Shown: one piece after another, positions 1 to 16,231 of the stretch
Layout of the letters: every line of letters starts with the position of its first letter
Numbering within the stretch: position 1 is the first letter of the stretch
Origin: Hormiphora californensis
Lineage: Eukaryota; Animalia; Ctenophora
Assembly (NCBI GenBank): GCA_020137815.1
Contig: CM035352.1
Coordinates: forward strand, 1,922,001 to 1,986,000
Reading direction: 5' to 3'
DNA length: 64,000 nt
The notes under the pieces: model-generated
Database searches by the model: none
What the model was told of the DNA's origin: nothing
The model's input: only the letters and a program-made list of their open reading frames with translations
Program-made: the position numbers and the translations under genes

Positions 1-3000
1 TATGGGACCATTGAATATTGGCGTTGAGGATCAGATTACGGAGGAAAATCCGGTACGTATTGCTGGGGGGGGGGGATACGGTTAGTGTTTTGGGGTAAGT
101 TTTATGGAAAATGTGAGTTACAGTTTTGGTTAATTAGGGGGAGGGTATAAATTGGACAACCAGAATACACGCAGTAGTCGTTTTATGTTATATTTCACAC
201 ATACATACACTCAGTTTGGAGAACTAGTGGTACGACAAAACACGGTATGAGTAACTGTCAATCGATTATTGGTTGTGTGTCGGTGCTGCTGTGTCATACA
301 TTGAAATGGGAGTTGTATGTAATAGTTCGTTTTGATTTTGGGCAACAAACACCCCGGTGTCCCAGGAGTTTATTTTGGCCGGGAATGGCCGTTTGCCTGT
401 GGCCGATTTGGCCGATTTTTTGATTTTTGATTTTTGACCAATTAGGTTCAATTATGGCCAATTAGGGTACTTTCTTGACCCCTGAGCACTTTAATAAGTA
501 GCTCACGTGATTCAGCGTGCAAAAATAGGTGGGTTTAGTGCCCAAGTTTGATTTGTTGATGAAATTTCAATTTTCGGTCTTTTTGACCGAAATATTCCTG
601 TTATTCCCCCCCTATTCCCCCTTTTTACAGGTAGATTTTGGCCGAAAAGCCGAAATATTCCTCCTCTGAGAGGAAGACTGAAAAAAGTGGGAAACAATTT
701 GATAATAAAATGAAAATGACGTAAACCGACATATTTCGATACGCTGAATCACGTGAGCTACTTATCAAAGTGCTCAGAGGTCAAGAAAGTGCCCTAATTG
801 GCCATAATTGAACATAATTGGTCAAAAATTGAAATTTCATGAAAAATATCAAACAATCAAGCTTGACCACAAACCCCACTAATTTTGGTACGCTGAATCA
901 CGTGAGCTACTTTTTAAAATCCTCTTATGCCAATTAAGGGAGCTAATTGGCATAATTGGATGTTAATTGGTGATTCTGAAGGATGTATCATAGCCATGTC
1001 ATTACCCACTATCCCCACTAATTTTGGTACGCTGAATCTCGTGAGCTACTTTTTGAAGTCCTCAGATGTGAAAAAAGGGCCGAAAATCGGCCATAAGACA
1101 ATTTGGCCGACGGGAATGGTATTCCCGTATTCCTCTATTTGGGACACCGGGACAAACACTACATGTTCTCATTGACATCCTACCCAACTAGACCTCTAAA
1201 TTTCTCTCTCTCTCTCTCAGATAGTAAGACGAGTATCAGAGTTCTTTCACGGTGGCATCCTGATTGGTGATCAGAGCAGGTGCTATCAGTTCCTTGGATG
1301 CTCGAACTCTCAACTCCGGTCTGCTGGTGCTTGGTTTGTCTACGAAGATGAACAAATAACGGGTGAGTTGTTACATTGCACGTCACGCACCCAGGGGCTC
1401 TTGGTTTGTCTACGAAGATGAACAAATAACGGGTGAGTTGTTACATTGCACGTCACGCACCCAGGGGCTCTTGGGCCCCGGAAAAATAAATAGGTGGGCA
1501 CAGTCACTAGGAGACGGTGAACTGAATGTGAACAGGGGGAATAGTTGTTACAATCCACTGTGCCCCAATCCTAAACAACTCACGGCCACGAAGCATCTGA
1601 GTTTTGGTATGTCTAAGGTAAGGAGATGTAAATTTCATGATCCCCCTTGATTGGGTTATGGTATGAAATGGTCGGTAAGGAGTGTGAACTGGTTGGTAAG
1701 GAGTGTGAACTGGTCGGTAAGGAGTGTGAACTGGTTGGTAAGGAGTGTGAACTGGTCGGTAAGGAGTGTGAACTGGTCGGTAGGAGTGTGAACTGGTCGG
1801 TAAGGAGTGTGAACTGGTCGGTAAGGAGAGTGAACTGGTTGGTAAGGAGTGTGAACTGGTCGGTAAGGAGTGTGAACTGGTCGGTAGGAGTGTGAACTGG
1901 TCGGTAAGGAGTGTGAACTGGTCGGTAAGGAGTGTGAACTGGTCGGTAAAGAGTGTGAACTGGTCGGTAAAGAGTGTGAACTGGTTGGTAAGGAGTGTGA
2001 ACTGGTCGGTAAGGAGTGTGAACTGGTTGGTAAGGAGTGTTAACTGGTCGGTAAAGAGTGTGAACTGGTCGGTAAGGAGTGTGAACTGGTTGGTAAGGAG
2101 TGTGAACTGGTTGGTAAGGAGTGTGAACTGGTCGGTAAGGGATGTGAACTAGCAACCATATTTGTATTCTCTTACTTACCACCATTAAATGGCCTATCCG
2201 TTCCGTAAATCTTAACCTCCGCAATATTCATATAAAGAGGTTTATCATCATCTACCATTTCGGAATCTTCCAACTTAACATAGGATGCTAACTGCGAAGT
2301 GTCACAAGGCAGAGTGTAGGTTTGAGAAGTTACGTCCCATCCATTCGTTAAATTGACCTCTGTTATCTTGCCACAGTCAGCAATCAGTGTCGTACCATCA
2401 GCATCATACAAATACAAATGGGTACCAAGTAAGCGCTTGATTATTACAGCATGACCATTAAGCCTGAAAATGATTGGAATTTTTAAGAATTCTCTGCGAC
2501 TTTGTTTATGATCGCTCCCAGTTCCTACCTGTTAATTATGGCAACTTGTGACACAAAAGCAGGTTCTTCTAATTGAAGTTTCAACCATTGTAGTGGTTCT
2601 GGTTCTATAACTGAATTTGTGTGGTAGAACGTATTGGGGTCACCGTCGATAACATCCTCAGGCGGGCGATGTTGGTTAGCATGAACAGTCTTTGCTGTTG
2701 CACTGGAAATTGGCAGGAGTTGACCATCCGGAGTTGAAGAAGCTGTGTCCAATGATTCTAGAAATAGCAGAAGTGCTACTAGCTTCGTTATCATTTCTAA
2801 AGCAAAGAGAGGGTGTGAAAGGGAACTGAGCCGAGGGTAAGGCCTCCCAGGCAGCATATGGATCAATGAGTTCCTAATTAGTTGGTAATCACGACCAATC
2901 ACAAATCTATGGCATGGCCCAGAGATAAAGTCATTCACGTGTGAATAAAACCCCCCAACGGTGGCAAAGCCTCTATGCTAAACCGCCAGCTCCAACGGGC

Positions 3001-3159
3001 TGGCAATATACCAACCGCTCAGAAGAAGCAGAAGAAGTCTTTCCCTCTAAGGTGTGCCGTGTGCTAAAGCTAATGGTCTTGTCTTTTAACTAAAGCAGAC
3101 AGAACTGATCTTTTTCCTCCCTCCCCCTCTCTCTCTCTTTATCTTTCTCTCTTTCTCTT

Positions 3160-3248
<89 letters not shown>

Positions 3249-6200
3249 CGCCCTTGCTTTTCCATCTACTCTGAAAGAAGAAGTCTTTACCCTTTACATC
3301 CAACAGGTGTGCCGTGTGCCAAAGCTAGTGGTCTTGTCTTCTAACTATAGCAGACAGAGCTGATCTTTTACCTTTCCTCTCTTTCATCTCCCCTCTCTCT
3401 TTCTTTCTCACGGTACATTCCATAGTTGACGCTATTCGGAAGTGGATAGGAGATTTCTCGAAGGAGAGGAGTAAGGCAAAGTTTCTGACTCGGCTTGGCC
3501 AGGCCTTCACTACCACGGAATCACTAATGATTGATAACGCTGCTGAGGGTCTCATTGATGATATTGAGACGCCAGATGGGAGATATGTGTTCAGTGATGG
3601 AATCGGAAAAATATCCCTGTCAGTTGCGAGAGAGGTAATAAGTTATTGCCATAGCAATGCAACTGGAATTGTAACTTGTTGTCATAGCATCTGGTATTAT
3701 TGTTGTCACAGCGACCGGGGTTGTATTAGTTACACATACCACTATCCCTAGATTAAAGAAAAACAAGAGACACTGGAACACCTTCCCTCTGCATTTCAAA
3801 TCCGGTATGGAGGGTGCAAGGGAATGGTAGCACTTGACCCCACACTGGGAGACACAAAGAAAATTATACAGGTGAGGTAATATAGTAATCCTAGAATCAG
3901 CTTGTTACCATGGTAATGTCGCTAACACCGGTACTGTTTCAGATTAGACCCAGCATGAACAAGTTTAAAAGTAACCATAAGGATATCGAGTACATCAAAT
4001 CCAGCAAACCTAGTCAACTATACATGAACCGACAGGTAATATCCTCAGCCAAATAAGGATATATTTACTGAACTGACTTGATATGATGTGATATAATTAA
4101 GATTGGGGAGATAGGGGGTGTTTACTGTGTATTACCTAAAAGAGCTATAAATCTCTCAACTATCACAACTATAATACCACCCAGGTTATTTGGCTGTTGA
4201 CCGGTTACGGAGTACCCCGGCAAGAGTTCATCAACCTCCAAAATGACACCCTGATCAGCTTGGCTCGGTCCCTGGTATCACCCGATCAGGCTTCCACCAA
4301 CCTCATGAACTACCAGGGAACAACATGTTCGAGGAGATACTCAATAGTAATATAGATCTGACTCAAGAACCCTTCCACAGATCTCAGTTGTTATCTTTGT
4401 ACAGATTCCACGTCAAGGAGGTGACTTTTAATTGCCTAATTAATTAGTAAGCTTAATCAGTTAGCCTACCTAGAAATTATAGTAATCATACCTTATATTA
4501 GGGCAAATTTAGGGCAAATATTATAATGTATGACTAAGTTGCTGATTATGATAAGACACCAAATGATTCCCCCCAGGTGCTGACACGGACTCGTATAGTG
4601 AATGGCAGCGGAGGGTGGGAGGCAAATGTTTGGGGTGATGGATGAAACAGGCACATTGGAGTACGGAGAGGTGTTTGTGCAGTATTCCGACAAGATAGCA
4701 TCACCCGGGGTAAGTTTTAGGGGTTAATATATGGAGAGACACGTGCGGGGCTCGCGAAAGGCAGTCTAGCTTGGCAACACATAGCATAAATCTGAGAGAG
4801 AGAGAGTGTGTGTTTGAGGGATCACGTGTCACACCTTCCCAGTTCAGCTGCAGCCATTAGCTAACACGATCTAAGCTTAAAGAAATTCCGCCTATTTTTC
4901 TAATGGCTGATCCCGGCATCATGATCTAGCACATGTAACAAACATAAAGATCTGACAGAATTTCATTCTGAGTCCACCAAGCAGAAATCTAACGCTGTCG
5001 ATTTTTGCTTCCCGCCCAGTTAACCACTTATGAGCACGGGCTGTTAGTCTGACATGTATCTATTAGTAGATAAAGGGAGCAAGATGGAGAGAGAGTGAGA
5101 TGAAGACAGAGTGAGATGGAGGCAGAGTGAGATGGAGAGAGAGAGAGTGAGATGGAGACAGAGTGAGATGGAGAGAGAGTGAGATGGAGTGAGAGCAAGA
5201 TGGAGACAGAGTGAGATGGAGACAGAGTGAGATGGAGACAGAGTGAGAGATGTGAAAAATAGGGACAAATCCTTGGATTTGCGGTACGATTGCCCCAGTA
5301 CTACTAGCATATTAGCTCACACTTCCCTGTGTAGGTGAACAAGAAGATACTGACTGGAAAGTTGTTCATAACAAAGAATCCCTGTGTTCACCCGGGAGAC
5401 TTGAGGAACTTTACCGCTGTTGACAATCCTGCACTTCACCACATGTGTGATGTAGTTGTCTTCCCTCAGAAGGGTGAACGGCCCCATCCCAACGAACTGT
5501 CAGGTTAGTGGTCTGTCAGCTGTCACCATGGTAACAATGTAAGCTGTCACCATAATAACTCTGTAAGCTGTTACCATGGTAACACAGCTAGCAATTATTA
5601 TGAATATGGCACTAACAATTCGTCTAATTGAGAATTACTCCTCCGATCCAATGACAGGTTCAGATCTTGATGGTGACGAGTACTTTGTATGCTGGTTGGA
5701 ACAACTCCGGCCCTCGGATGGACAACAAACCGGCAGGAATGTACGATAGTGCAGAAACGAAGAAGGAAGCCTCACCCGTCACACCCGTCCAGATTATAGA
5801 TCACGTGATCAAACACATGACAAAACCTAACAACCTGGGTAGGTCACTGTAAGATGCTGTTTTTATGCAGACTAGTAACTGAGTAGACAAACTGAAAAGC
5901 AGTGGTTTCAAACCAACCAACAAAAGGGAATCAACACATAACAAGCTCAGATAATTTCCTCTTTTCGCAGTTCTCACAGATTCTCGTACAATGTACATTA
6001 TGCATTTGCAAATTGTCGAAAGACTGAAAATTTATAAAAATTACTATCATTTTCTAAACAGAATGGCTTGTTGGTAAAAACTGAAAAACGGATTATTGTT
6101 AATTTAAATGTTTTTCCCAGTTCCTGATCAATCATTTTCATTCATTATTGATGGGTGAGGGACTTTCTCGGTCGAAAATCCTATTCCGTTCAGCTCGAAA

Positions 6201-9200
6201 ACTTCTTCTAAGTATGGGCAATAAGATGTCCTCTTTCTGCATCCTGATTTGCCTCCTCCGTTTTGTACACCAAAGATCTAACGTAAAGATAGAACCTCCT
6301 ATTTGTGATGGTATACAGGATAGGATTTGCCACAACTCCAAGACAGATCAGGGAGCTCTCTGCTAGCGCATATTCACTCGACTCGTTGATCCGGCTGACC
6401 AAGTTCCGGATAGTGCAGACGAGGTAGAGTGACCAACTTGCTAGGAACACTGAAGTCAGGGTGACTACCGTGATCAATGCTTTGTAGTTGAACCCAGATT
6501 GAGGTGTTAGACGTTTCTGGACAGCCACACCGAGCAGGAATGCATTGCAAATAGACGTCGTGATGAGGGGGACGAATACCACAAAAATAATGGTGCATAA
6601 TTCTGCCAGTCCTGATCCTTTTTGGAAACTAACCCGGCAATCTCGCTCAATTGGGTCAAAATCCAAGCGTTGGACTTTTACCATAATGGCGCAAATCCCA
6701 GTAGTAAGTAGCCAAAGGAAAATAAGAACACCCAATGCCAATCGAGGCGTGATGATGCTCCTAAAGGGTGCTAAAATCAGGACCATTCTGTGGATGGTGA
6801 TGGATGTTATCGTCCACAGGCTTATCATACCGAAAATATGTTTGCACCAATAGAACGCCCCACAAACCTCCATACCGAAAGGGTTTGAGTCCGTTATTGA
6901 GGAGATGCAGGGTGGTAGGATACCCACAATTGTGTAGAGCAAATCTGCCACCGCTAAATTCCGGACAAACATAACGGAAACTTCGTCCAAGTTGATTGCG
7001 TTGTATCGAACCGAGGAGTAGATTACAAGAGTATTCCCAGATATCCCAAAAAGGGTTGTTATTGTAAAAAATACAACGGAATACCATCGGAGATTCATTA
7101 TTCAATCCTATTCAATGAATAAGTTATTCGTCCTGAAATAAATTACCGCGTCTCACTTCGTCCTTATTAAATAAATAAACTGAAATCGAACGTGGCAACA
7201 CATGAACAAACTTTAAACTAGATCTGAGAGAAAGTTATAGCTACAAAAACTGATAAATCTTGGCATACGCTTATCTACAGCTCAACACGTCACCTTATAA
7301 TACATGTGGAGAATATATGCAAAAGCTACTATCAGCTATGTTGTTTATGGTTTACTTCCTGATACAGCTGCATGGCCGAAGTTGAATGTAATTCTCCGGG
7401 TTGCCTTTCCTTTATATTACATTTTCACATCTCATCGTACAAGTTAAAATTAAGGAACATGAATTGTTTGTAGGCTCGAAATCGTATCATGATGAGATAA
7501 AAGCAGGAAAATAATATTTTTCAGAGATCTACAGAAGTTAAATTTGCTCGAAAGGCACACGTCTTTTAGCGAGATTCATCCCTTACCTACTACACTGCCG
7601 TTTTTCAAAATTTGTTCCAACCCCCCTCCCCGGGTGGGTGTGTTCCTCTTACTCCTTGTACCCCCAGGAAAGATAAGTAATGCCCACCAAGTCCACTGTG
7701 ACAGAGACTCGGTGGATTGTGATAAAGCGGTCAGGCTGGCTGAACAGCACTCAATTGCAGTCGATTACCCCAAGACAGGTGCGTTTCTCTTTAACAATTA
7801 GTGATTACATAGGAGCACCGAAAGATATAAGTTTTAGTTGAAACAGGGGCCTGTAAACAGCTAACTAAATATCCCCCTCGAAACGCCAATTCTCCGCCAA
7901 TCTGTAAATGTTACTAACCTGAAAAATGTGCAGAAGCGTCCCCCGGTATTCTGAATAAAATTTACCACCACCACCCTCTCTCCTCATCTTCCAGGTGTCC
8001 CGGAGGACTTTGCCCGAGATCTCCGGGTCCAAGAGTACCCTGACTGGATGGAGAAACCTGACAAGCCCTGCTACATATCCAGCTCAGTGGTGGGAAACTG
8101 TTATCGTATTTGTAGATCTCTGGATCACGTATTGGGAGAGCAGGATGCCCTCTTCAGCCCTGATAAAGATATCAAACTGGACCTAAGGTAGAGATCAATG
8201 TTCGTTCTGTTGTTCTTCTAGAGGGAGGGGGGGTGGCAATGGGTGGGGTGAGGTCGTACGTGAACATTGGATGCGTGGATTGTGGATTATGGAAGATCAA
8301 GTATTACATTGCCCTTTCTCGCATCCTTTTTTAGTAACTTTTTGTCCCCCACATGATGGACTCCTCGAAACTCATTTCCCCAGGTTGGTGGTGGAGAGAA
8401 AATACTACGACGAGTACCTGCACGATGCGGTTGCCATCTGTACGGCATACAACAAGGAGTTGTGTTCCCTTATGCAGCAGTACGGGCTAACGAGCGAAGG
8501 GGATATTGCTTGTGGGTGCCTTAACACGGTAATATTGTGCTCACAACACCATACGATCCTGGTCCATGTATACAGTATACACTGTACAGTGTATATACAG
8601 ATCAGTCCCAATATTTTCATATGCGTCGCATGGTGGTGTGTGAAAAACTTCTGGGTGACAACTGGGGCTTGTCACTGACAAGTCCCAGTATCACGGTGTT
8701 GTCATTGATCACTGATCAGTAACTTTTTTAGTCATTGATTGATAATACTTCACAAAGCCCCTCTCCCTGATTGATCTTTATCTGATATGTTCCTAGGTGA
8801 AGCAACAGTTGGATAAGAGCAGGCAGAAAAACTATGATATCACTGAGGAGTGTGTTCGATTCTACTGGAACTTACAGGTAAAAACTAGTTATAATTTGCT
8901 AATCAGATATCCTTCTCCATCCTTTTCTCCTAGCCGATTATACTCCAGAAACCCAGTCCGATTGAGTGAATTGCTGACAGTGACTATTTTATCTACTACT
9001 GCTATAAACTAACTTTTAAAAAGGGGGATACCCACTAATAATAAAATTCCGTACCCCGGGGCAAGTAAGCAGACCTTACACCCCAAAATACCCCTGTGTA
9101 CATTATGAAGCGATGAGGGGTACCTGCTCACTTCACAAGGCATCTGTATAGGTGTTACGAGGGTTAGAGGGGAGTTAGTTAGTTGGTATCCTGATATCTT

Positions 9201-12200
9201 CGTTATAACTTGTAGGATGGAGGGATGGAGGTAGGATGATAGGGTGATGAAGTTCAAGGGGAGAAGTGGAGTGTCTTGTGTGTGGTGTTGTGAATACAGC
9301 TCAGTTTTATCTGTTATTTGTACCTAGAGCGAAGGATTTAAATTCACAGGAGCAATAAACACCACCTGTTGAACACTTATTATCATTCCATGCCGCTGTA
9401 TTTGTCAAATAAGCACACTGTTCATCTCCTCTGTTTGGTTCGCTCCCGACCCATTTATTCCAATCACCATCCAATAAAGGAGTACCATCGGGCCAAAAAT
9501 ATTTGTTGTCTTGCTGTGGAGCGTAAATACCTGTGAACAAGAATAAATGCATTATGTTTCATAATGCTTTGTTTCCCCGCCAACCTTTCATCCCTAACAT
9601 GAAGGCAGACAGACATTTTTGATGATTTATAGATCAGGCAAACAGTATAGAACAAATCCTTGTGTTTTCGTTGCACTAAATTGTGCACCACATTGCGGAA
9701 TTGCGTGCCACACATTTCCTGAAAACCTGTCAATAAAGTGGTTTATGGAGGAGCAGGTTGTTGTTGTGTGTGCGGCTCTAGTTGCTACATGTTGCCCCTC
9801 GCAACCTGAAACGGGACAAGAGAGCTGACTTGCTACACATAGTCACTATATCCGTTTAGATTTCTAAACCCCCTAGATGCCTTTTTGCAAAAGGCATCCG
9901 GGTGAAGGCCTTTGGCCTTCACCCGGGCGGGGAAAAAATAATGATAAAAGATCTTTAAATACTCTAATGGGGCAGACGGAAAGAGGGTCGAGCTAGGCAA
10001 AAAATATCGATACAAGTTACAAAAAGTAAATCTTTACCTAGCCAACTTCTTAATTTGTTGTGATATTTGATCTGCCATTGGAACCTATTGTTTTGCTCTT
10101 CATTGAGAATAGTTGGTAGTTCACCATTCAACCCAGAACAGTAAGATTTACATTGCGAGTGTTTTCTTTTTTTGTCTGGAAACAAAACCAGTAGGTTGGC
10201 TGTTTCTGAAATGTGTGAAATGTTTTATATTTCAAATATTCCATGTACAGTAGGACGTAGGTCCTACTCCCCCAACAGCGGGCAATGATATCTGACAATA
10301 TGCTCACACAGTTGTTATTTGAATAGGTAAGAAACGTATCAACTGACAACTAGTATGTCTGTGATTTTGGGTGTTTTCTTACTTGTAGTTGTGACTGATG
10401 ATTCGCCACAATCCGGAGTCTCGTATCCATCGTTACACGTGACGACCTGTGCTTTCCACCCTTTTTCGCCACAATTCAAGTAGAGAGTGTCTCCATCAGT
10501 GACCTTGCCAATCCCAGCAGTAGGCATGTAGGAAAGTGGAATGGTAGAGGTTGTCAAGGTACAATCGACTGAAACAAAAAGAAGAGTTTTGTAAAGAATG
10601 ATATATTATTTGATCCGAGGTATTTGCTACTTTTTTACAAATAATAAGACTGTCCTCTCCGAACCGGGCTCAATTTTCAACTTGATAGCTTACCGCTTTG
10701 CGAAAAAGCTAGACCGTGTGTAACCACCAAAACAAATGATAGAAGTTTCAACATTGTTCACAGCGAGAGAGATCAACCAACAAGAAAATATATTTTCTCA
10801 AATGGTGATGATATAGATCATAGCATGGGAAATTGTAATTGCCAGAGAGAGGTGTGGCAGACAACTTTGCCCTGTTTGGGCACGTGCTTTCCTAGCAACG
10901 ATGGCACATGTGCCCTCGATCCCCCAGATCAACCACTTAGTCGTTTTATTTGAGATGTACAGATCTATAGAGGGCGAAAGAGAGGGAATTATAGGGGAGG
11001 AAGGGATATATTTCAACCTTTATTTATTTATAGTACGAACGTTGAGCATTGCATGCACTGGACACGAGACAGCCAGATCAAGTGAATATTGTAAACACTC
11101 CATTTTGAGAAAAAGTACCAATAAAGCCGTGATAAACACCCCAATTTCAGAAAAAGTACCAACGGATGTTCTTCGAGGAGTTTGAAACGAAAAAAGGAGA
11201 GTGGAGGGCGAACTTTGAGAAGGAATGCTTTGCTAAGGGCTCAGCCTGGTACCTGGCAGCCTACAAATACGCACCTGTAATCAAAGTGATTGATAAAAAC
11301 ATTCGACTTCTCTCGTTTGCATGGTGTGTTGGGGAGGTATTGTGTGAGCTGGCCAGGAAGAACAAGAACGTGGGTGAGAGAAAGTCCTGTACGGAGCTGA
11401 CTGTGGAAAATATGGAGATGTGGCTGTCACAACAAACTGGCCAGCTGGTACGTTGTAACACGGTGTGAAGTCTCAAAGTGTGAATATATTCTGTTTTAGA
11501 ATCCTTGATCTAAAATGTTTAGTTACTGACTATTCTTCTGAATTAAAATGATGCAATAGTATCCTACCCACCTTTCAGGCTAGAGAGCCCCCGGAAGAGT
11601 TTGTAAATACCAAGGAACGTGTAGACAAATACAGTGATGAGTTTCAACTAACTAACATTGGTAAGATTTGAACCTAAAACAATGGTGTAAAACACATAGA
11701 TCATACAACAATGGTAATCTACAGCTGTATTATTTCGTTGTAATCTACAATTGGTTCATTACTGCCCTAATAGTTTGGTGTCCGTTACGTTTTCTTGCTA
11801 TAATAATGTCTGTGTCTCCTCCCTCTCTATCGTTGTCTATCTCTATCCATATCTCTCTCCTTTGATTCTTAACTAGTTACATCACTTTTCCAGCACCCCG
11901 TTGTTACGGTTTACCGTTCACTGCTCACGAAGTGTGCTACGTCAGTAGACTGGACACCAAAACGAACCCTCTCTCGGTCCTTCAACAACGAATCTTCCTG
12001 GAACACACAGGTAATAAATCGGTTGAAGACAAGAAGCATAGTGTTGTCCATTTAGTTGAAACCTTAACATTGCTTATTATTGCCTTGCTCGACCCTCCCT
12101 CCCTGCGCCCCGCGACGGAGAGGATTTTATAAAATAAAATAAAAAGGTTTGAACAAAACAAGCTTATTACCTGAACTCACATCTATTAAATCGTGGTGTC

Positions 12201-13292
12201 TTCAGAATGGGTAAACACACACATGACACACATAAATTCAGCTAATCACTAGTACTATTGTTTTCAGACTGGGACGAGATACACTTGGAGCTGAAGAAGA
12301 AGAGTCTGGCAGAGAACTTCATGATTGTACAATCAACACCCAATGTTATCTTCTTTGCTGGTGTAGAAATACTGGAAAAAGTACATTCCCCTTTTTACAT
12401 TTTCTTGGTTTTATCAAAATATATTACAAATTTTGCTTGTTAAGACTCGGTATGGACACAATGTTCCAACATAACAATTTACCTTCTATGCGACTCAAAA
12501 ACAGCCGATTGGTCAACTTATTGATTCAATTTACCCTCCCTCGACAGATGTACACTGTCCGCCGGTATTTGGAGGAATGCCCCACACTAAGACTCCCTGC
12601 CGCCATCCTGGTCAACTGGGTTCACTCTAACAAACTAGACGAGGAAGCGAACCATCTTGCTATCGACTTTGTCCTACTTTTCATTCTCTCTCGACTCATG
12701 GTTAGTTACAGTTTCACTGAATCAATAACCAATCGGACAGATCGGCTGTTTGGTTAGAGTTTCGTTTAGTCCTATCGTTCTTGTCTTATCTACAGTTGAT
12801 TCACTTTTCAAATTTTACAGGACAAGAAGGAGAATAAAGTTGAAATAGAGCCCTCGACTGACCTTGAGTTTTATATCACATACCTCTGTGAAAACAAGTT
12901 TCCATCATCTATAACTGTCAACAACGCAGCCGCATGTGACATCTATCTGGAGTTCCTTAATTCCATTATCTACGGTGGAGTTCTTGCCAACCAGTCACTA
13001 ATGACCTGGCTTCCGGGGAGAATGCGGATACTTTGTAGATCTTTGTGCGAGTATATTACATCTTACAGGTACTCGTTTAACATAATATTGTAACATTGTG
13101 ACATGAACTAGATTGGATAGTGTGCTCTTGATTCTGAAAACCATTCTTTTTCCTATTATGGGAATGTCGATAGGACTAATTCCTATCCTGTTTAGAATCA
13201 AGTTTGTGAGTTACGCTATGAGGGAATACCATGAAACATGCTATTTCCTGTTCAACCAATCACGAGGAACCAGTGAACGGAGACGTGGTGAG

Positions 13293-13323
<31 letters not shown>

Positions 13324-15983
13324 CACATTATCATCTTGGACCTTGGTGCAATATTTGTGAGGTAACAGCTTTCACTGTGTTGCCTGCCGCAGAGTGTTTA
13401 TATGGTGATTGATCAGAGCCTACGGTATGCCTCGCTCTCGATAATTCAAGTATGCTAAATCAATTTCAACATTTTAGGAAAGAGGAACAAATCTGCACAA
13501 TACAAGGCCGTGCACTGCTTTAGGATTTGCGCTGATACGGACCTCTGTTCACGGTACCTTAGTAAGGTCTCTGGTGCTGAGGTGAATATGAGGATTAGAA
13601 ACGACAAGAAATCTGAGGTAATTAACTAATCAATTAGTACATATTTTGCTAATTGGTATGATTGCTAATTGAATAATTAGTTAGTAATGTGTTATAACTG
13701 TTTAGATTCTTAGCGTGGAAGCATGGGGAAATAAGCCTGAAGTGCTCCAAGATGTTACGGAAAGTCTGCAGATACCCTTTGACTCGAAAATCTTCAATTG
13801 GAACGGTAAACGGGGGGGGCTGTAACCATGGTTACAAAGAGGGGGTTACCACGGTTACACGTAGGGGGTAACCATGGTTACAAAGAGGAGATCACCATGA
13901 TTACATGTTACAAGTAGAGTTTGCAGATACCGGATACCCATTACCCATTGACTCCATCAACACACATAAAACTCTAGATATCGACACTCTAGGGAAGTTA
14001 GTAACCGACAGCCATTGTATCTATCTGAGTATGCAGCAGAAGAAGAAGGACCCCTTTGTTGAATACAGTGTACAGAATGGGGAAGGATACTTCATGAAAC
14101 ACAGGATAAATAATATTCTGGATTTGAGCAACTACTCTGATATGGCCCGGTCAGCCGAGACACGAGTCATGGAATGGATCAGTGTGAGTAGGATTTGTTA
14201 TGTTCTAACCCTCCCTTTACAGTTTAATTAGGCAAAGTAGGATCATGTCACGTGTTGTGTCCTGTGTATAACACAGTTGGAAAGCTTCCCAAATATTTCC
14301 GATAAAATATCCATTGTAAAACTGCTACTTATTTAGTTAGTATCTGCCCCAAAGAGTTATTTTGATTATTTTCAGACGCTACGAAAGCACTACAACAGAT
14401 TTTCTCACGGTGGCCTCTCTGCCAAGTGTGTATTGGGCCGTTTTGCAGACTTTAGAAACTGTATCATGCCAGACAAGGACAACATCAAGTATGAGAACTC
14501 ATTGACTTCCGAGGGAATGACTTCAAAGCCAAGGCCGATAGAGACTGAAAACCCGAGACTATGTTCTGGACATTGATAATCTATCTGATATGCCCGGTCA
14601 GGACCGAACGCATGTGAGGAGTGATACGTATGGACACGTGTTGGCCTGTATAACACAGTTGGAAAGCTTCCCAAATATTTCGGATGAAATATCCGTTGTA
14701 AAACGTCTGATTTTTTGCTACTTTTTTATTTAGTTTCCAAGAAGAATTTTGATTATTTTCAGACGCTACGAAAGCACTACAACAGATTTTCTCACGGTGG
14801 CCTCTCTGCCAAGTGTGTATTGGGCCGTTTTGCAGATTTTAGAAACTGTATCATGCCAGACAAGGACAACATCAAGTATGAGAACTCATTGACTTTCCGG
14901 GGTAATGACTTCAGAAGTCTCACAGATGCCCTGATACTTGAGAGACTTAGAAAGGAACCCGAGGACGTGTATCGGTTCAGGTACAAGCTGATAATTTGTA
15001 ATTAGATGACAATTATGATGTTAATTCGACCCTCGTAACATTCCTGATTCTGGAACACCCCGCTCGACCCTCTCTTCGTGCCCACAAATGTAAAGGACAA
15101 AAGATGGTTAGAATATAACAACTTGCTCGCTCACACCATGATATTTCTTAACACCCTGTACACCCTGTACTCCTGTAGAATCAGAATGGTGCACAATGAC
15201 GTGCCCATTACGACACATTGGCAGATGAAGGAAGGACAACCTGTCTTCCTCTACCTCTCCTGGTCTCCTCTAGTGTGGGGTGAGATGCACTGTTTTGGGG
15301 ATGCTGATGGACCTCTCGACACCATATTCTCCATCAACTCTGAACCGTGTCTAACTCAGGAGGATTTGGACAAGACAAAACACTGGGGGAAAATACCCGA
15401 ACAAATAAAGGAGTGGCTGGAAATCCCTGATTATACACGCTCAAGTTAGTGTTGGCCATTTTCTGTTTCAGTCATCACACATTTATTGTTTCCAATGTTA
15501 TCAGGGTTACAAGATTAACTAAAAACTGTTTTAGATTCCAAGTTTATTGTTAACTTTAACGAAGCGGGCAGAAATAGGGTGTTCGAAACCAAGACATTTT
15601 GTGAGATATTATCTGAGAAAGTGACTGTCTGGAAAATCCCCGTCAAGGAAACTGCCCGCTTGCAGAAGGTATTTAAATTTGGGATCATCAGCGGCCGGCT
15701 TCGGGTATCGTGACCCTAAGTTAATTATTATCAATCATCCCTTCCTAAACTCACATTAATTAACTAATTAACCTTCACCCAGATGCAAGTTGAGTTTATC
15801 GACCATCACAGGCAGAATGTCCGGTTTTTTAAGAAAGCCAAACAGCAGATCACCAGCAATAAACGAAGCGACTGGGAGGGTAGAATTGTGGAGACTACCC
15901 TACCATACTTTGATAATCGCTCACCAGGACTCCTGAAAGAGTTTTATAACAAATGCATTGCTATTGCACAACTGCAATTATGA
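1..15983 (+). CDS. Eukaryotic RNA-dependent RNA polymerase (RDR/RRF/QDE-1 type), 5'-partial, with ~700-aa C-terminal extension. Exons: <1-52, 1221-1362, 3426-3634, 3752-3871, 3943-4035, 4185-4420, 4577-4709, 5335-5503, 5658-5838, 7668-7778, 7995-8187, 8384-8528, 8797-8877, 11151-11447, 11579-11660, 11894-12010, 12268-12380, 12548-12700, 12821-13068, 13196-13287, 13478-13617, 13706-13805, 13927-14183, 14763-14980, 15179-15444, 15535-15668, 15783-15983
   Basis: Hand-spliced GT-AG exons with matching phases. They encode RdRP hallmark motifs: [18 protein letters not shown]...[85 protein letters not shown] (catalytic DLDGD 5663-5677), [21 protein letters not shown]...LSFAW. Three 1-nt indels (~4316, ~4601, ~5712) need correcting. 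AATAAA at 16024-16029. Confidence 0.95.
353..1151. mobile_element. Non-autonomous DNA transposon in RdRP intron (12-bp TIR, 8-bp TSD)
   Basis: TIR CCCGGTGTCCCA (353-364) / TGGGACACCGGG (1140-1151). Flanking direct repeat ACAAACAC at 345-352 and 1152-1159. Internal ~90-bp inverted repeat (~430-518 vs ~742-829) and repeated ACGCTGAATCACGTGAGCTACT motifs. Confidence 0.85.
1330..1469 (+). repeat. 70-bp tandem duplication of RdRP exon end plus splice donor
   Basis: CTTGGTTTGTCTACGAAG...ACGG|GTGAGT...CCAGGGGCT occurs twice head-to-tail. Confidence 0.9.
1668..2150. repeat. 21-bp minisatellite (GGTCGGTAAGGAGTGTGAACT), about 23 copies
   Basis: Visible tandem array; it explains the repetitive ORFs at 1613-2224, 1647-1895 and 1892-2152. 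Confidence 0.95.
2172..2794 (-). CDS. Secreted F5/8-type-C / F-type-lectin-like (galactose-binding-domain fold) protein nested in an RdRP intron; 3' end uncertain
   Basis: ATG at 2794, signal peptide [20 protein letters not shown]. Exon 2794-2529 has [12 protein letters not shown]...WLKLQL...VSQVAIINR; exon 2463-~2179 ends [11 protein letters not shown]. This is the typical discoidin/fucolectin pattern. A GTAAGT donor at ~2178 suggests a further exon. Confidence 0.75.
3034..3385. repeat. ~90-bp direct duplication flanking a (CT)n microsatellite
   Basis: GGTGTGCCGTGTGCYAAAGCTARTGGTCTTGTCTT...GCAGACAGA at ~3051 and ~3306; (CT)n at ~3163-3246. Confidence 0.8.
5083..5250. repeat. GA-rich minisatellite (GAGATGGAGACAGAGT-like units)
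   Basis: Visible tandem units in RdRP intron. Confidence 0.85.
6208..7098 (-). CDS. Single-exon rhodopsin-class (class A) GPCR, nested in RdRP intron 5839-7667
   Basis: 296 aa with 7 hydrophobic segments; GN in TM1, NLAVADL in TM2, HRM at the DRY position, NPILY in TM7. Confidence 0.93.
   Translation of the reverse strand: MNLRWYSVVFFTITTLFGISGNTLVIYSSVRYNAINLDEVSVMFVRNLAVADLLYTIVGILPPCISSITDSNPFGMEVCGAFYWCKHIFGMISLWTITSITIHRMVLILAPFRSIITPRLALGVLIFLWLLTTGICAIMVKVQRLDFDPIERDCRVSFQKGSGLAELCTIIFVVFVPLITTSICNAFLLGVAVQKRLTPQSGFNYKALITVVTLTSVFLASWSLYLVCTIRNLVSRINESSEYALAESSLICLGVVANPILYTITNRRFYLYVRSLVYKTEEANQDAERGHLIAHT
9307..10754 (-). CDS. Secreted C-type lectin with N-terminal Cys/sushi-like module, nested in RdRP intron 8878-11150
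   Basis: Exon 10754-10694 encodes signal peptide [18 protein letters not shown]. Exon 10568-10383 has VDC...LNC...TC...DC. CTLD exons give [21 protein letters not shown]...WLG and FWPDGT...WVGSEPN...EQC...WNDNKC...CE. EPN plus WND are the mannose-type Ca2+ site motifs. Confidence 0.88.
14130..14915 (+). repeat. Tandem duplication (~390 bp) of an RdRP-extension exon with flanks; first copy garbled at its 3' end
   Basis: The exon starting ACGCTACGAAAGCAC occurs at 14376 and 14763. Copy 1 runs into scrambled sequence and a stop; copy 2 keeps frame to the donor at 14980. Confidence 0.85.
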
Positions 15984-16231
15984 TTATCTTTGTACAATGT
16001 GTGTGTGTGCATGTGTGTCTCTTAATAAATTGTGTTATTTTTTCAAATATTTTAACTAATTTTTACAGAAGATTCTAAATGATATCTTGTTTTATTATGG
16101 TTACAATCAAATCATGGACATCTACTGTACTAACTAGTGATCGAATATCAACTTTTGTACTAGCATTGTTAACACACTAACATACCGTCTCGCGTTAGCT
16201 CTAAATGTTAACACACTAAAATCCCTTGTAG

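Follow-up and report, generated by a model that had tools for sequence, protein, structure and literature searches.

An RdRP gene of the ctenophore Hormiphora californensis that probably extends into a lineage-restricted C-terminal tail

To our knowledge, the members of the RDR/QDE-1/EGO-1 group of RdRPs end soon after the KGSAWY-type region, and animal RdRPs outside the nematodes are poorly understood, their choice of template being not known. In S. pombe (Rdp1-Cid12-Hrr1) and Tetrahymena (Rdr1-Rdn1/2), the RdRP is accompanied by a separate, catalytically active ncPAP partner. RdRPs of the RrpA type in Dictyostelium carry an N-terminal Dicer-like helicase domain. Pseudo-nucleotidyltransferases (pseudo-NTases) of the DZF type (NF45/NF90) and KH-like modules without GXXG (N4BP1/KHNYN type) are non-catalytic and bind RNA or partners.

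Here we describe a locus of H. californensis (assembly GCA_020137815.1, contig CM035352.1, positions 1,922,001-1,986,000, forward strand; this whole stretch of 64,000 nt is the window) at which an RdRP gene very probably continues through 13 exons into a tail of about 680 residues. We consider it likely that the locus encodes a genuine RdRP whose C-terminal extension is lineage-restricted.

The polymerase and its downstream exons

The exon translations of the polymerase match the cellular RdRP profile PF05183 (Pfam; E = 6e-17, 9e-22 and 3e-5), and the catalytic loop DLDGD, within a stretch of 12 residues, lies at about position 5630 in the translation and is also present in the paralog described below. 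In a genome-wide profile scan, domain positions 1-43 of PF05183 fell just upstream of the window. It is established that the window RdRP is a cellular RNAi-type polymerase with an intact DLDGD loop.

When the exon chain was re-derived from the sequence, the GT donor in phase 0 that had been reported after the last RdRP exon was found at 11448-11449, on a codon boundary, and 13 further GT-AG exons were recovered in matching phase up to the stop at 15983 (Table 1). The tail exons total 2052 nt, that is, 683 codons and a TGA. All motifs quoted in the earlier note were located: PRCYGLPF in exon 2, CDIYLEFL in exon 5, a motif of two parts (13 and 10 residues) in exon 4 and a further one in exon 6. 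Neither exon 1 nor exon 2, nor the open stretches upstream of them, contains an ATG, and direct joining of 11447 to 12548, with exons 1-3 omitted, also keeps the phase. The tandem duplicate of exon 10 has a 1-nt deletion that shifts the frame, followed by a stop, and is probably skipped in the mRNA.

Two other features were noted in this region: an ATTAAA at 11543, within the proposed intron, and an in-frame ATG at 12452 that is open into exon 4.

Table 1. Features of the RdRP gene and its proposed tail (positions in the window)
Feature	Position	Strand	Basis or remark
RdRP catalytic exons, several	within 3401..8531	+	PF05183 matches; gene start upstream of window
Last canonical RdRP exon, KGSAWY...LSFAW...GQL	11151..11447	+	translation; ends at phase-0 donor
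RdRP-to-tail intron, proposed	11448..11578	+	GTACGT donor, cttTCAG acceptor; retention would end the protein at TGA 11466-11468
Tail exon 1, 27 codons + 1 nt, no ATG	11579..11660	+	in phase, strong splice sites
Tail exon 2, PRCYGLPF...SRLD, no ATG	11894..12010	+	exon chain, codon usage
Tail exon 3, weak GTAGAA donor	12268..12362	+	exon chain, codon usage
Tail exon 4 (opens with a 16-residue stretch)	12548..12700	+	exon chain; ATG directly after acceptor
Tail exon 5	12821..13068	+	exon chain
Tail exon 6 (12-residue motif)	13196..13287	+	start of module common to paralog
Tail exon 7, first half of 'KH-like' module	13478..13617	+	RNA contig over 13477-13612
Tail exon 8 (22-residue stretch)	13706..13805	+	RNA joint 13805/13993
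Tail exon 9	13993..14183	+	RNA-supported acceptor; in-frame alternative 13978, 15 nt upstream
Degenerate tandem duplicate of exon 10	14376..14576	+	14225-14600 aligned to 14625-14990
Tail exon 10	14763..14980	+	exon chain; weak paralog similarity
Tail exon 11, W-rich	15179..15444	+	conserved in relatives
Tail exon 12	15535..15668	+	RNA joint 15668/15783; homologous stretch in P0002
Tail exon 13, TGA stop 15981-15983	15783..15983	+	exon chain, RNA joint
AATAAA poly(A) signal	16024..16029	+	read in sequence

A paralog with the same architecture, and the question of one gene or two

Two PF05183 loci were found by profile scan in the whole genome, the second of which lies on contig C1. This paralog is intronless from the RdRP C-terminus onward, with an uninterrupted frame of 773 codons, in which residues 1-195 are the RdRP C-terminus (the last canonical RdRP exon of the window is homologous to residues 110-195; BLASTP E = 2.6e-9, z = 10.8) and the next 578 residues form a tail. 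A module of about 110 residues is common to the two tails, being encoded by exons 6-8 (and exon 10) of the window gene and found in the same order in the paralog. For exon 6 the counterpart is residues 416-448 of the paralog, with 43% identity in alignment A5 and p = 0.01 within the collinear interval; exon 7 corresponds to residues 446-476 (z = 3.9), exon 8 to residues 499-520 (BLASTP E = 2e-4, z = 5.8) and exon 10, with weak collinear similarity, to residues 527-580 (z = 2.8, p = 0.017). From the conserved RdRP Trp to the module there are about 241 residues in the window gene, when exons 1-5 are counted, and about 221 in the paralog. The profile of the module matched two loci alone in the 110.7-Mb genome, both of them behind RdRPs. 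Between exons 1-5 and the corresponding region of the paralog, similarity was undetected (Fisher p = 0.25), as was similarity of exon 2 to the paralog or to NTases, and a MAFFT alignment of all exons with the paralog tail could not be trusted beyond exons 6-8. The RdRP part of the paralog contains an in-frame TAG flanked by two frame shifts (the patch at C1:2059832); the paralog may be a young pseudogene, or its sequence may have assembly errors.

The in-frame fusion of RdRP and tail, as the earlier note had proposed it, is supported by the uninterrupted frame of the paralog and by the restriction of the module to RdRPs, rather than by RNA across the joint. In spliced contigs of a poly(A) metatranscriptome, the joints 13805/13993 and 15668/15783 were seen, the former placing the exon-9 acceptor at 13993 instead of 13978, and the joint of exons 6 and 7 is partly supported by a contig in which the last 15 nt of exon 6 are joined to exon 7. 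Confirmation by RNA was thus obtained for three downstream joints (one of them in part) and not for the joint 11447/11579, for which, as for exons 1-5, no contig or read was found among the metatranscriptome contigs. The databases searched held no full-length cDNA or annotated protein for the gene.

On a different reading, which we regard as improbable, the TGA at 11466-11468 terminates the RdRP, and the downstream exons belong to a separate mRNA beginning with exon 4, with its start at the ATG at 12548 (perhaps after SL trans-splicing to that acceptor) or at 12452, so that exons 1-3 would be chance open segments. A separate start is conceivable because exon 4 opens with an ATG at its acceptor and the upstream ATG is open in the same frame; SL trans-splicing has been reported in ctenophores (Derelle et al. 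2010, as cited in PMC7986045). The uncovered joint, the dissimilarity of exons 1-5 to the paralog and the ATTAAA in the intron also favour two genes. So does the frequency of chance chains: two fixed sites 1.1 kb apart were linked by an open chain in phase, 294 nt or longer, in 2% of Markov-simulated sequences and in 4.5-11% of real 1.1-kb windows, true genes included; a chance chain of this size is not very rare (2-11%).

The codon usage of exons 1-3, however, is exon-like and above that of stop-free intronic ORFs: they scored 0.18, 0.14 and 0.24 bits per codon, respectively, where confirmed exons ranged from 0.05 to 0.36 and stop-free intronic ORFs had a mean of 0.00 (sd 0.115); 7% of these null ORFs scored above exon 1 and 1.5% above exon 3. 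Against two genes there stand, further, the paralog, in which a single frame takes in both the RdRP and the shared module, and the occurrence of the module behind RdRPs alone. Oligo-dT RNA contigs fall on the 3' half of the tail and none on the last RdRP exon, at which an independent RdRP message would terminate; this argument is weak because contigs cannot show absence.

We thus favour one long gene, in which 11447 would be spliced to 11579 and the message would run on through the 13 exons. The extension would then comprise about 240 residues from exons 1-5, the module of about 110 residues from exons 6-8, and about 340 residues from exons 9-13. Because both genes share this architecture and the paralog has it in a single frame, the RdRP and its tail would have been duplicated as one unit.

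Relatives and possible fold of the tail

Fragments of exon 11 were recovered in relatives as two ORFs on ENA metagenome contigs, 97% and 74% identical; in related organisms the conservation of exons 11-12 is 74-97%, whereas the translations of the flanking introns have diverged. In a search of representative sequences with exon 11, the matches beyond two short metagenome ORFs were spurious bacterial proteins with CFGDADG repeats. A search for homologous proteins with the last RdRP exon, the open stretch of exon 2 and the paralog tail, in which proteins of similar length alone were visible, returned nothing useful, and neither did a scan of JGI metagenomes.

All searches for known domains took either single exons or the contiguous ORF of the paralog as query. 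In Pfam, neither the exons nor the paralog tail matched the NTP_transf_2, MTPAP-like_central, PAP_assoc or TUTase profiles at E<=10, and the only hits of any tail exon were at the level of noise for ten queries (DUF7752, E = 0.074, exon 4; DYW_deaminase, E = 0.023, exon 7); for DUF7752 there was no match in the genome and nothing was found in the literature. Sequence searches against the PDB yielded no match, and in hhalign comparisons with three of the genome's own ncPAPs the probabilities stayed below 1% and the placements were not in order. Exons 9-13 and the C-terminus of the paralog matched no CYTH or triphosphate-tunnel profile in Pfam and do not show the ExExK pattern. Judged by its sequence, the tail is an orphan, lineage-restricted region that no known sequence family matches.

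The TUTase/ncPAP-like fold that had been suggested for the tail accordingly finds no Pfam, PDB or hhalign match; the sole positive result came from ESM-Atlas, a weak lead for exon 4. This lead points to PAP_central, PAP-OAS1, OAS1_C, DZF_C and MTPAP-like clusters (0.91; 161 of 256 features), with a recognition value of 2166, below the reliability mark of 2300; the nearest clusters also include PAP_NTPase and PAP_assoc, and six of ten fall in one clan. Exon 5 had no match in Pfam, the PDB or ESM-Atlas. AlphaFold2 modelled the contiguous paralog tail with a pLDDT of 33.5, too poor to use, and Foldseek run on that model returned noise and no NTase; a model of the module from a four-row alignment, made to look for the beta-alpha-alpha-beta-beta-alpha fold of KH domains, reached a pLDDT of 44 and was likewise too poor to use. 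Within the tail, conservation is highest in the KH-like module, yet a GXXG loop is absent from it, exon 7 (an 18-residue stretch) showing no G-x-x-G, and KH families were unmatched at E<=10 on the exons and the paralog tail.

It is tentatively possible that an inactive nucleotidyltransferase of the Cid1/TUT/TENT type makes up the N-terminal ~330 residues of the tail and that a KH domain follows it. The palm would then lie in exons 2-3 and a PAP/OAS1 helical domain in exons 4-6, a single-chain equivalent of the RdRP-ncPAP complexes. The Atlas clusters of exon 4 speak for it, as do an R-x-Y-x4-P spacing seen by eye in exon 4, in the paralog tail (LRIYLSRDP) and in the ncPAP L009 (LRTYAKTYP), a YGL followed by an acidic stretch that exon 2 has in common with the paralog, and a low-confidence model whose predicted order (two helices, two strands, two helices, three strands, helical bundle) would be compatible with an NTase. 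The motif resemblances were, however, spotted after the fact, the Atlas scores lie under the reliability marks with exon 5 blank, and NTase, PAP_assoc and KH matches are absent at the level of sequence and profile from the exons and the paralog tail; the hhalign and Foldseek results also count against it. The complete picture, with an active RdRP, a dead PAP/OAS1-type NTase-like domain, a KH-like module and a further domain in one polypeptide and in two ancient paralogs, appears doubtful.

The lack of a GS...DxD motif, reported in the earlier note, was confirmed by reading the sequence. In an 18-residue stretch of exon 2, the positions of hG[GS] and [DE]h[DE]h are occupied by YGL and SRLD, and the catalytic pattern hG[GS]x9-13[DE]h[DE]h with a third acidic residue is absent from the exon. 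The genome encodes at least eight canonical ncPAP loci elsewhere, with intact FGS...SDVD motifs; scans with PF03828 and PF22600 matched eight other loci, the tail locus not among them. An active nucleotidyltransferase that tails the templates or products of the RdRP, for which the weak exon-4 lead is the one point in favour, is very improbable in view of these catalytic positions, the unmatched NTP_transf_2-type profiles and the canonical ncPAPs elsewhere, and it was rejected for want of the catalytic motif.

Because a catalytic NTase motif and an NTase profile match are both absent, the tail is most likely a non-catalytic appendage that would bind RNA or a partner protein. It might deliver templates or template 3' ends to the polymerase, and could be the built-in equivalent of accessory subunits recruited in trans by other RdRPs.

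Significance and comparison with known systems

A conserved C-terminal extension that is specific to RdRPs and present in both RdRP genes offers a concrete handle on template choice. If its first domain is a pseudo-nucleotidyltransferase, the RdRP-ncPAP partnership of fission yeast and ciliates would have a fused counterpart in animals; if it is not NTase-like, a new accessory region of RdRPs, restricted to this lineage, would still have been described. Should the single-chain reading be true, an early-branching animal would possess a self-contained RDRC-like machine, which would suggest that RdRP and NTase became coupled early enough for a gene fusion to fix the pair one time.

The window gene resembles the RDR/QDE-1/EGO-1 RdRPs in its PF05183 match, its DLDGD loop and its KGSAWY-type C-terminal region, and differs from them in about 680 additional residues (about 580 in the paralog) that contain no known domain. 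Like the RDRC-type complexes, it would couple an RdRP to an extra RNA-handling module, which would be of the same partner type if the PAP/OAS1 lead of exon 4 is real; here, however, polymerase and module would share one polypeptide, and the module carries no catalytic motif and matches no NTase profile. The RrpA-type enzymes are a precedent for the fusion of an RdRP to another RNAi-related domain, although theirs is a recognisable helicase at the N-terminus and that of the window gene a C-terminal orphan. The DZF and KH-like modules indicate a possible working mode of the tail, whose kinship with them is conjectural.

The RdRP gene and its downstream exons

The RdRP of the window is intact, its tail is in phase and expressed, and the paralog holds RdRP and tail in a single open reading frame. 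The genome (G000) is a eukaryotic assembly of 110.7 Mb in 45 contigs, with GT-AG introns, and the window corresponds to G000:C3:1922001-1986000. A scan of this genome with PF05183 places the start of the RdRP gene upstream of the window, and the exon translations of 3401-8531 include the catalytic DLDGD loop (Table). Long tandem repeats lie in or near the RdRP introns (window 1641-2200 and 3100-3300): one whose unit, some 21-24 nt long, translates as VGKECEL/RSVNWS, and a (CT)n repeat.

Table. Features of the RdRP gene, tail segments aligned with the paralog, and ncPAP/TUTase-type loci
Feature	Location	Evidence
RdRP exons	window 3401-8531	Pfam PF05183 match, E = 6e-17, 9e-22 and 3e-5 (exon translations)
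Last canonical RdRP exon	window 11151-11447	C-terminal letters ...WLSQQTGQL, then GT on a codon boundary
Window exon 6	paralog residues 416-448	p = 0.01
Window exon 7	paralog residues 446-476	z = 3.9
Window exon 8	paralog residues 499-520	E = 2e-4, z = 5.8
Window exon 10	paralog residues 527-580	z = 2.8
ncPAP/TUTase-type loci	G000: C6:2544423, C10:3037402, C11:2269575, C3:4719460, C2:8349612, C4:4355425, C6:8029684, C1:1568325	

Downstream of the last RdRP exon, an independent rebuilding gave 13 exons, with GT..AG introns and matching phases throughout; the tail comprises 683 codons and ends at TGA 15981-15983, with AATAAA at 16024. This chain confirms that proposed in the earlier note, with small refinements, and every motif quoted there was recovered. 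Retention of the intron after 11447 would lead to a protein stop at TGA 11466-11468. A direct splice from 11447 to 12548 would likewise keep the phase.

The codon-usage log-likelihoods of exons 1, 2 and 3 are 0.18, 0.14 and 0.24 bits per codon, respectively (confirmed exons, 0.05-0.36; stop-free intronic ORFs, mean 0.00, sd 0.115). Neither exons 1 and 2 nor the open stretches 5' of them contain an ATG, and thus these exons, if coding, are necessarily joined to an upstream coding exon. Chains in phase and of comparable length arose in 2% of sequences simulated with a Markov model and in 4.5-11% of actual 1.1-kb windows, the latter a control set that includes true genes; these statistics are supportive of the fusion, if modestly so.

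Comparison with the C1 paralog

Genome searches by PF05183 and by the last RdRP exon of the window returned a single RdRP locus besides the window gene, on contig C1. This locus is essentially intronless and contains a single 773-codon open frame, in which residues 1-195 form the RdRP C-terminus (BLASTP E = 2.6e-9, z = 10.8 against the last RdRP exon of the window) and 578 more residues follow without interruption. Exons 6, 7, 8 and 10 are collinear with this paralog tail, and the distance from a conserved RdRP Trp to the start of the shared module is about 241 residues for the window gene (exons 1-5 counted) and about 221 for the paralog. Exons 1-5 showed no detectable similarity to the corresponding paralog region. 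In a whole-genome scan, the module profile matched at the window and C1 loci only. Because this orphan module occurs twice, each time directly 3' of one of the two RdRP genes and once in frame, duplication as a unit is the simplest explanation. The comparison is decisive for the predicted RdRP-plus-tail architecture.

It is conceivable that exon 4 is instead the separate start of its own transcript, possibly via trans-splicing, since an ATG lies immediately after its acceptor; ctenophores are reported to use trans-splicing (Derelle et al. 2010, as cited in PMC7986045). An in-frame ATG at 12452, open into exon 4 (window 12452-12547), could also serve as an alternative internal start, given intron retention or an internal promoter. 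Nevertheless, the single paralog frame and the confinement of the module to the two RdRP loci back the fusion claimed in the earlier note; probably, RdRP and tail were duplicated together as one gene, the window copy being spliced as proposed there.

One in-frame TAG (2832-2834) interrupts the RdRP part of the paralog (L025, G000:C1:2057001-2063500). In the surrounding stretch (2800-2880), the residues homologous to a segment of the window RdRP lie in another frame (SLARPAIGQMFHCCRGS), indicating two frame shifts about 55 nt apart. Because the remaining frame, about 1,427 codons (>1,400), is open, these lesions represent either an assembly error (indels) or a very young lesion or pseudogene.

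Transcription and conservation of the tail

The RNA evidence is from the only public run that contained the locus, an oligo-dT aquatic metatranscriptome stored as contigs, which share 99% identity or more with the window. Joints 13805/13993 and 15668/15783 were seen spliced, so the 3' half of the tail belongs to spliced poly(A) RNA, and in one contig exon 7 is preceded by 15 nt fitting the end of exon 6. The last RdRP exon, joint 11447/11579 and exons 1-5 had no contig coverage in this single run. In the RNA, exon 9 uses acceptor 13993 rather than 13978, which shortens it in frame by five codons; alternative splicing between these two in-frame acceptors, 15 nt apart, is possible. About 390 bp, from the last part of exon 9 across the intron to exon 10, are duplicated in tandem (window 14225-14600 versus 14625-14990). 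Of the two exon-10 copies, the upstream one (14376-14576) is degenerate, resembling a pseudo-exon because of a 1-nt deletion followed by a stop, and must be skipped in the chain. Intron 8 contains repeated palindromic units, GGTTACC/GGTAACC (window 13815-13900), and intron 6 a (TCACTT)n microsatellite (13290-13330).

The tail is conserved: exon 11 is matched by two ORF fragments from ENA metagenome contigs (97% and 74% identity), of which one runs on into an exon-12 homologue, and the translations of their introns are unrelated to the window introns. When the window tail was searched exon by exon and the paralog tail as a contiguous ORF, no Pfam family was found at E ≤ 10, except for two noise-level matches. 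The PDB sequence search gave no match to the tail, the protein collections no homologue within the length limits of the search, and an exon-11 search of 1.84 billion representatives no full-length protein. We found no paper on an RdRP with such a C-terminal extension. We regard the tail as a novel, lineage-restricted C-terminal extension of a cellular RdRP. Exon 5 weakly matched an unrelated locus (L003, G000:C1:3357643-3357756, minus strand; E = 0.08, 34% identity), probably by chance.

Fold and possible role of the tail

The genome contains at least eight canonical ncPAP/TUTase-type loci, several of them intronless. In L009, L010 and L012, whose full sequences were read, the (F/Y)GS...SD(V/M)D motifs are intact, and thus separate active nucleotidyltransferases are available to the RNAi machinery. 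The tail, as the earlier note had observed of the NTase motif, has no catalytic signature. Of the degenerate TUTase/ncPAP-like fold proposed there, what stands is a lead below the reliability marks of the ESM-Atlas search: the nearest named clusters of exon 4 (PAP_central, PAP_NTPase, PAP-OAS1, OAS1_C, DZF_C, MTPAP-like_central and PAP_assoc) all represent the helical domain following the NTase palm, with values (0.91, 161/256 features, recognition 2166) all under those marks. Exon 5 gave nothing in this feature search. Against this, Pfam, PDB and hhalign all returned no NTase. Hhalign of a profile of three of these ncPAPs against exons 2-5, the paralog tail and the exon-4/paralog alignment gave probabilities below 1%, with placements that were not collinear. 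AlphaFold2, run on the contiguous paralog tail and on the shared module (four-row alignment), reached pLDDT 33.5 and 44, respectively, and the matches of the former model in Foldseek were noise and included no NTase. Exon 4 has an R-x-Y-x4-P spacing in common with the paralog and one genuine ncPAP, and exon 2 a YGL...acidic stretch in common with the paralog; both resemblances were noticed by eye, post hoc and without statistical support. Conservation within the tail is highest in the stretch described as KH-like, but this stretch has no GXXG and no KH profile match. Nor did a CYTH-type C-terminal barrel profile match the tail. A pseudo-NTase fold is a tentative reading on the doubtful side, and the full single-chain RDRC picture is slightly less probable.

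Lacking a catalytic signature, the tail would most likely act as a built-in appendage that binds RNA or a partner and so supplies the polymerase with templates or 3' ends. In RDRC-type complexes, the accessory subunits would be the functional analogue of the tail that is built into the window gene.
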